From: Octopus sinensis
Lineage: Eukaryota
Direction of reading: 5' to 3'
Assembly: GCF_006345805.1 (NCBI RefSeq)
Contig: NW_021830470.1
Coordinates: forward strand, 1-64,000
Length of the DNA: 64,000 nucleotides
Part shown: positions 27,940 to 28,685 of the stretch, one piece after another
Layout of the letters: the number at the start of each line of letters is the position of its first letter
Numbering within the stretch: the first letter of the stretch is position 1
The notes under the pieces: generated by a model
Told to the model about the DNA's origin: nothing
The model's database searches: none
What the model saw: the letters and a program-made list of their open reading frames with translations, nothing else
Position numbers and translations under genes: made by a program

Positions 27940-28685
27940 GGTAGGATCTGAGGTAAGACAATCTCCCAAAGCGGGTAACTTGACTTAACACAAACAGGGA
28001 GAAGTCATATCTTTGTGAGAACTGAGTAAAGACGATCTCCCAAAGTGAGTAACTTGACTCAGCTCAAACATACACATACAGGGAGAAGTCATATCTTTGT
28101 GGGATCTGAGTTAAGACAATCTCCCAAAGTGGGTAACTTGACTTAACACAAACATACACACACAGGGAGAAGTCATATCTTTGTGGGATCTGAGGTAAGA
28201 CATTCTCCCAAAGTGGGTAACTTGACTTAACACAAACAGGGAGAAGTCATATCTTTGTGAGATCTGAGTTAAGACAATCTCCCAAAGTGGGTAACTTGAC
28301 TTAACACAAACATACACATACAGGGAGAAGTCATATCTTTGTGGGAACTGAGTTAAGGCAATTTCCCAAAGCGATAACTTGACTTAGCACAAACATACAC
28401 ACACACAGGGAGAAGTCATATCTTTGTGGGAACTGAGTTAAGGCAATTTCCCAAAGCGATAACTTGACTCAGCACAAACATACACATTCAGGGAGAAGTC
28501 ATATCTTTGTGAGAACTGAGTTAAGACAATCTCCCAAAGTGAGTAACTTGACTTAGCACAAACATACACATAAGGGAGAAGTCATATCTTTGTGGGATCT
28601 GAGATAAGACAATCTCCCGAAGTGGGAACTGAGGTAAGACATTCTCCCAAAGCGGGTAACTTGACTTAACACAAACGTACTCATG
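27940..28685 (+). repeat. Minisatellite made of one dead zinc finger (~84-bp unit, ~9 units)
   Basis: GGGAGAAGTCATATCTTTGTG at 27997, 28081, 28165, 28239, 28323, 28408, 28491, 28574. Confidence 0.9.

Follow-up and report, generated by a model that had tools for sequence, protein, structure and literature searches.

How a zinc finger that can no longer be translated comes to stand in nine closely similar tandem copies, and whether such growth tells us how long C2H2 arrays arise, are the questions raised by an array of 84-bp repeats in Octopus sinensis. The array lies on contig VCDQ01005406.1 of the PacBio and Hi-C assembly GCA_006345805.1, within the 64-kb stretch of DNA analysed here as a whole and referred to as the window. 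The window is rich in TEs and falls in a ZNF cluster; with two intact multi-finger exons, many dead remnants and dense TEs, it is typical of octopus ZNF cluster regions. Our results favour, with a probability of about 0.85, a neutral non-coding minisatellite for which the 84-bp periodicity of an already pseudogenised C2H2 exon provided the seed.

The array occupies 741 bp of the plus strand (27944-28684) with a period of 84 bp. TRF calls it at 27988-28624 (period 84, 7.7 copies, 88% matches, score 948), and further TRF rows with periods of 158 and 242 represent the same array. A 21-mer anchor occurs in eight exact copies (at 27997, 28081, 28165, 28239, 28323, 28408, 28491 and 28574) and nowhere else in the window. 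The anchor spacings of 84, 84, 74, 84, 85, 83 and 83 exactly reproduce those of a preliminary description of this DNA, which had counted about nine units. A 30-mer spanning the TGA lesion discussed below has eight matches against 0.00 expected from 100 shuffles. Frame translation across a unit gives REKSYLCGI*VKTISQSG*LDLTQTYTH, in which the reading EKSYLCGI*...SQSG* previously given for a typical unit is found. Placing the array in finger register yields nine plus-strand units, U0 to U8, and a 30-nt partial copy internal to the last of them.

U0 (27920-27993, 74 nt, TGA at 27949-27951) is a hybrid first unit; it becomes array sequence at 27944, and the 24 nt at its 5' end are divergent and not part of the homogenised tract. 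Its 10-nt linker deletion recurs in U3 (28162-28235, 74 nt, TGA at 28191), which keeps the ancestral GGT after the TGA; in both 74-bp units the missing bases come from the CA-rich linker CATACACATACA. U1 (27994-28077, TGA at 28023), U2 (28078-28161, TGA at 28107) and U4 (28236-28319, TGA at 28265) are each 84 nt long. U1 has CAG before the first zinc-binding histidine (His1) and CTC as the His1 codon, and both U2 and U4 have TAA before His1. U5 (28320-28404, 85 nt, TGA at 28349, TAG before His1) contains an extra AC in the CA-rich linker and a secondary 1-nt deletion that restores the frame. The adjacent U6 (28405-28487, 83 nt) is 98% identical to U5 and reads EKSYLCGN*VKAISQSDNLTQHKHTHSG, with the TGA as its sole stop. 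U7 (28488-28570, 83 nt, TGA at 28517, TAG before His1) is nearest to U1 and U4. The last unit, U8 (28571-28684, 114 nt), contains 30 nt repeated out of register (28595-28624 and 28625-28654), with a GTGGG(A/T)A microhomology at the join, and TRF also reports this repeat as a period of 30; it therefore holds two TGA codons (28600 and 28630), and its 3' end retains CGTACTCAT. Taking a minisatellite to consist of units of ~10-100 bp that extend over at least ~0.5 kb and include interspersed variants, the locus has that structure, being a head-to-tail array of 741 bp and nine units of 74-114 nt, 83-98% identical and with mosaic variants. A three-unit higher-order repeat (TRF period 242) was dropped as a general structure, given that lag-3 identity (86-95%) is not above the array mean of 91%; the TRF signal arises because the two 74-nt units stand 242 bp apart.

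The units are dead C2H2 fingers. A DNA profile built from the 24 intact fingers of the window (14 in gene A and 10 in gene B) matches every unit in nhmmer searches with E values of 3.6e-06 to 7.7e-13, and the units are 70-81% identical to the intact consensus, which begins ACAGGAGAGAAGCCATATCATTGTGATATCTGTGGTAAATCATTCTCT. The period of 84 bp, or 28 codons, is that of C2H2 repeats, and the linker remnant ACAGGGAGAAG aligns with the intact TGEKP-type linker ACAGGAGAGAAG. None of the units retains the C-x2-C-x12-H-x3-H pattern of a functional finger in one open frame. The unit translation has no Pfam zf-C2H2 match, and the plus strand carries 15-18 stops in each of its three frames. The codon of the second cysteine (Cys2) is TGA in all ten copies, comprising the nine units and the 30-nt partial copy; the change from TGT had been noted before for a typical unit. 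A 1-nt linker deletion, ACAGGGA[A]GAAG, is present throughout U1-U8, and the U0 linker is likewise one base short, possibly at a different base. In total, seven derived states occur in every one of U1-U8 but in neither the intact consensus nor any of four flanking dead fingers. These are the linker deletion, TGT->TGA at Cys2, CCA->TCA (Pro to Ser), CAT->CTT (His to Leu), GAT->GAG/GGG and two third-codon-position changes, the polarity of which we infer from sequence comparison with paralogous fingers as outgroups. A donor finger was sought among the intact genes and none was found, the closest being only 75% identical to the unit.

The preliminary description also ascribed to the units a shared pair of +1 and -1 frameshifts. 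The -1 corresponds to the linker deletion of U1-U8. The +1 is an extra helix base (G before TAAC) that shifts the frame in U0-U4, U7 and U8 but is missing from U5 and U6, which read AAAGCGATAAC with the frame restored; all units except these two are consequently frameshifted. The best reading is that the extra base was ancestral in the array and that U5 and U6 lost 1 nt secondarily from a U1/U7-like GTGAGTAAC. U5 and U6 share with U1 and U7 the motif AACTGAG, an xAG codon before His1 (xAGC) and an A before TAAC (GA). The alternative of U5 and U6 as ancestral units without the +1 was dropped on parsimony, since they nest with U1 and U7 and one deletion from GAGTAAC suffices. A check for stops that arose independently in different units found the Cys2 TGA to be universal and the in-frame stop before His1 to vary. 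The terminal stop of SQSG* is an out-of-frame TAA made by the frameshift and not by substitution. Of the nine units, five have TAA as the in-frame codon before His1, two have TAG and two have CAG; this second in-frame stop is accordingly not a shared lesion. His1 itself is lost in U1.

The array is embedded in a decayed C2H2 exon that extends over about 27716-32316 on the plus strand. Its leader (27716-27758), which reads ..SPIMNNLTKQKNPHIRE.., shares homology with the gene A and gene B leaders, and upstream of it the homology is ended by a SINE-like insertion. Two unamplified dead fingers precede the array. pF1 (27759-27842, nhmmer E 1.7e-10) has TCT (Ser) for Cys1 and GAT (Asp) for His2, and pF2 (27843-27919, 77 nt) has CAT (His) for Cys1 and a 7-nt helix deletion. 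Two more follow it, pF4 (28685-28768, nhmmer E 1.7e-19) with CGT (Arg) for Cys1 and pF5 (28769-28852) with a +1 frameshift in the linker and CGT (Arg) for Cys2. The 5' half of pF6 (28853-28885, 11 protein letters) is cut after its Cys2 codon by a LINE insertion, a 5'-truncated 3' fragment of ~495 bp (28886-29380, boundaries approximate, plus strand) that covers the RT C-terminal region and has ATG/TGA-type repeats at its end. The profile search recovers the 3' half of pF6 and then more degenerate fingers of the same exon at 29381-29645, followed over 30534-32316 by scattered degenerate fingers (30534-30699, 31742-31854 and 32184-32316), all on the plus strand. These later fingers are separated by repeat-rich sequence, SINE-like in part. 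No finger of the dead exon outside the array is amplified or carries the array's lesions; the flanking ones have independent lesions and Pfam scores below threshold. Leader paralogy to genes A and B, disabling lesions and the LINE fragment within pF6 together mark the exon as an unprocessed pseudogene. A two-copy, 140-bp tandem at 48977-49254 consists of the 3' end of the same LINE family as the fragment splitting pF6 (29230-29375 there).

That inactivation preceded amplification, as first proposed from the shared lesions, is well supported. Mean pairwise identity among U1-U8 is 91% (range 83-98%), and the flanking dead fingers average 65% to each other and 60% (57-67%) to the array. Ten separate TGT->TGA changes are not credible, and neither is the loss of one and the same linker base eight times over, so the progenitor already carried both lesions. 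Growth in several rounds is likewise supported. Besides their 98% identity, the adjacent U5 and U6 have the newer 1-nt deletion and several substitutions in common, which means that duplication went on after further decay. The unit alignment proposed as a check thus bears out this order, and also reveals that 15 of 45 pairs of informative sites fail the four-gamete test, which indicates either exchange between units or recurrent mutation. An exchange-type mosaic of this kind is typical of minisatellites. The 19 between-unit substitution sites are spread over codon positions 5/7/7 without bias, and those of His1, Phe and Gly are among the codons hit, as would be expected in the absence of protein constraint. 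Array length and the order of events are read from a single PacBio contig and by parsimony; exact look-ups of ORFs beside or within the array, together with a cluster look-up, retrieved no second record of the locus.

From this pattern we infer both the molecular mechanism and its neutrality. One finger of a decaying paralogue in the O. sinensis ZNF cluster would have lost Cys2 by TGT->TGA and acquired the linker deletion, the 1-nt helix insertion and several replacements of conserved residues. Repeated duplication of this dead unit may then have occurred via out-of-register pairing of neighbouring 84-bp repeats, the likely routes being replication slippage or unequal exchange between sister chromatids or homologues, partly through microhomology. 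Later exchange between units would have shuffled the variants. Last would have come small secondary events, namely the 10-nt CA-linker deletion, the 1-nt deletion of U5 and U6 and the 30-nt out-of-register join. The loss of 10 nt from the CA linker in U0 and U3, the extra AC in U5 and the 30-nt microhomology join in U8 point to slippage-type processes. Given that the array period equals the finger period, a misalignment of pre-existing repeats fits the data, and this suggests that the first misalignment made use of finger repeats already in place.

Concerted evolution could in principle account for the same homogeneity without growth. Here about nine fingers would have predated the death of the exon, and the sequence of one dead finger would have overwritten its neighbours by gene conversion. 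Exchange between units does appear in the four-gamete failures, U0 joins a divergent 24-nt stretch at its 5' end to a homogenised remainder, and a homogenising sweep would give a similar pattern. However, conversion would need to replace eight whole fingers and yet halt sharply at both edges, where the flanks are only 57-67% identical to the array. The nesting of identity from 98% for U5/U6 down to 83%, together with length variants copied along with their units, favours serial duplication instead, and we regard conversion without growth as unlikely. Whether by duplication or conversion, the turnover came after inactivation and took place at the level of DNA.

The two other alternatives question the reality or the neutrality of the array, and both are very improbable. 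Long-read assembly or polishing might have inflated or invented its length, a concern raised by the source, a short unplaced contig (65.5 kb) from a PacBio assembly. Yet no two units are identical, and they form an ordered mosaic of substitutions accompanied by two 10-nt deletions, 2-nt and 1-nt length changes and the 30-nt join, which is unlike stutter or collapse errors. The array might also be functional as a non-coding RNA, as a regulatory or binding-site array, or as a protein recoded by editing or readthrough. Nothing speaks directly for such a role; the minus strand has open stretches of up to 90 codons, and cephalopods show heavy RNA editing. A-to-I editing, though, is unable to mend frameshifts or to make a Cys codon from TGA. 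An Rfam scan of the window found no family, the unit translation is without a Pfam match, variation between units is unconstrained and the host exon is broken by at least a LINE fragment.

The living fingers nearby bear on how far this growth informs the origin of long C2H2 arrays in general. Gene A has an intact finger exon at 5680-6933 on the minus strand with 14 zf-C2H2 stretches matched by Pfam, and an exact look-up of its ORF (5680-6924, minus strand) retrieves a database record for a single-exon, 414-aa product. Gene B, at 53962-54882 on the same strand, has 10 such stretches. Each intact exon has a degenerate finger-like leader in front of it and closes directly behind its last HT(G/R)EKP linker. 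Pairwise comparison within these living arrays gives mean finger identities of 72% for gene A and 75% for gene B. Recent finger duplicates were looked for by pairwise identity in both arrays and none was found, with no pair above 86%. Lag structure in the two arrays is not significant by permutation, and block duplication, to which TRF periods of 336 and 252 had pointed, was dropped on the same ground.

The profile built from the intact fingers matches many degenerate fingers elsewhere in the window. Short minus-strand runs lie at 1513-1722, 5477-5697, 27309-27366, 38649-38784, 39632-39809 and 52921-53065, and the profile search of the window found none of the minus-strand runs amplified or homogenised. 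Several of them adjoin satellite or SINE sequence. Among the many dead-finger remnants of the window, exactly one has been amplified. TRF additionally finds about 16 other, unrelated tandem arrays in the same 64 kb with periods of 33 to 215, and tandem amplification is therefore a general habit of this genome and is not finger-specific. The preliminary description had seen the locus as a direct snapshot of how long C2H2 arrays arise. This reading is not demonstrated here: the living arrays lack recent duplicates and offer no recent counterpart, a single remnant is amplified, and unrelated arrays abound. Its narrower claim, that finger number can grow at the DNA level without protein selection, holds for this locus insofar as a dead unit was multiplied and its variants are spread 5/7/7 over the codon positions; the wider claim goes beyond what the array demonstrates.

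The other repeats of the window are diverse. A G+C-rich 63-bp satellite reaches 17.5 copies with 91-97% identity at 8851-9944 (plus strand) and recurs in the opposite orientation at 39813-40459 and 53064-53526, with short copies at 20843-20962 and 52578-52735. Its arms at different sites are 83-87% complementary, and several of its frames are open on both strands at once, which gives rise to spurious ORFs of up to 451 aa. A 146-bp satellite of five to six copies (internal identity 96-97%) is found near both window ends (1851-2719 and 56736-57453) in inverted, 96% complementary arrangement. An inverted LINE pair (21286-23809, minus strand, and 42109-43577, plus strand) is 96% identical over ~1.46 kb, and one copy has a 590-aa ORF with RT and PHD domains. 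The closest proteins to the LINE RT are 73% (an environmental ENA contig) and 59% (the cnidarian Hydractinia) identical, with relatives in a bivalve and amphioxus. SINE-like short tandem arrays of 2-4 copies and 89-98% identity were detected by TRF with units of 137/138 bp (7923-8328 and 33694-34104), 184/185 bp (34361-35164 and 49540-50219) and 177-190 bp (10339-10913 and 11364-11719). An ORF that runs through one of these elements has three matches among 5.8 billion proteins, all octopod (Octopus vulgaris, Argonauta hians and O. bimaculoides). Tandem duplication of elements of 100-200 bp looks common in this genome. TRF also reports very long AT/TA and TATA-type microsatellites of up to ~410 repeats (812-1364, 15093-15443, 19046-19511, 29816-30098 and 40887-41689).

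The value of the locus is as a clean, datable natural control, in which a unit incapable of making protein was multiplied about nine-fold at the exact finger period. The mutational machinery alone, through misalignment at 84 bp, is thus enough to lengthen finger arrays, and this provides a neutral baseline for arguments that finger number is under selection in the ZNF family of cephalopods, which is very large. A bolder and rather doubtful extension is that the input of whole-finger duplications is high in octopus and exposed by dead arrays, with purifying selection clearing homogeneous duplicates from living ones. If true, ZNF pseudogenes would show a systematic enrichment of 84-bp minisatellites derived from fingers, and the primate-based inference that change in finger number occurs mostly in functional genes by selection would be reversed. 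Dead arrays could in addition donate finger modules to living paralogues.

The closest known parallel is the finger array of PRDM9, for which the term 'coding minisatellite' has been used and whose 84-bp repeats evolve by duplication and deletion, slippage, unequal exchange and conversion (PMC3890296). The octopus array resembles it in having tandem 84-bp finger units of >90% identity whose evolution is not tree-like (PMC3890296). However, the reading frame of PRDM9 is open, and its variation clusters at the selected DNA-contact positions -1, 3 and 6. The octopus array has a stop in every unit, a frameshift in all but U5 and U6 and 15-18 stops per plus-strand frame, and its variable sites extend over linker, ligand and core codons. 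The leader of the host exon is that of the ordinary neighbouring ZNF exons, and this ordinary cluster ZNF paralogue gives no sign of PRDM9 identity. Dead arrays of this period have also been described before. Disrupted arrays of PRDM7 and PRDM9 paralogues occur in ruminants, horse and dog; in ruminant PRDM7, 84-base repeats are kept with multiple stop codons and the array measures 627, 710 and 960 bp by species, so that a dead array can still change in length (PMC4874674). Those arrays were inherited in a homogeneous state from a living PRDM9-like parent, and the sharing of lesions was not the point of that study. In octopus, by contrast, the amplification started de novo from one dead unit, among old neighbouring fingers that differ widely from each other.

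Duplication and deletion of whole 84-bp fingers is a common path of divergence in polydactyl KRAB-ZNF genes, as reported by Nowick et al. 2011 (PMC3126818). In primate pseudogenes changes in finger number were rarely seen (none in human and three in chimpanzee), which was taken as evidence of selection (PMC3126818). The octopus locus is a pseudogene and has nevertheless gained fingers about nine-fold, and so offers a mild counter-example to that report. The expansion of cephalopod C2H2 ZNF genes is covered in PMC12513265 and PMC10547256, the latter citing Albertin et al. 2015, and keyword searches of these two papers found nothing relevant on pseudogenes whose fingers had been amplified. The locus leaves the accepted picture unchanged, with variants coming from slippage or unequal exchange and selection acting as the filter. 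The PRDM9 coding minisatellite and the dead PRDM7 arrays have already revealed the DNA-level mechanism. The octopus array thus belongs to a known kind of element, and clearly exemplifies a known process, here in a pseudogene and in a lineage that is new for it.
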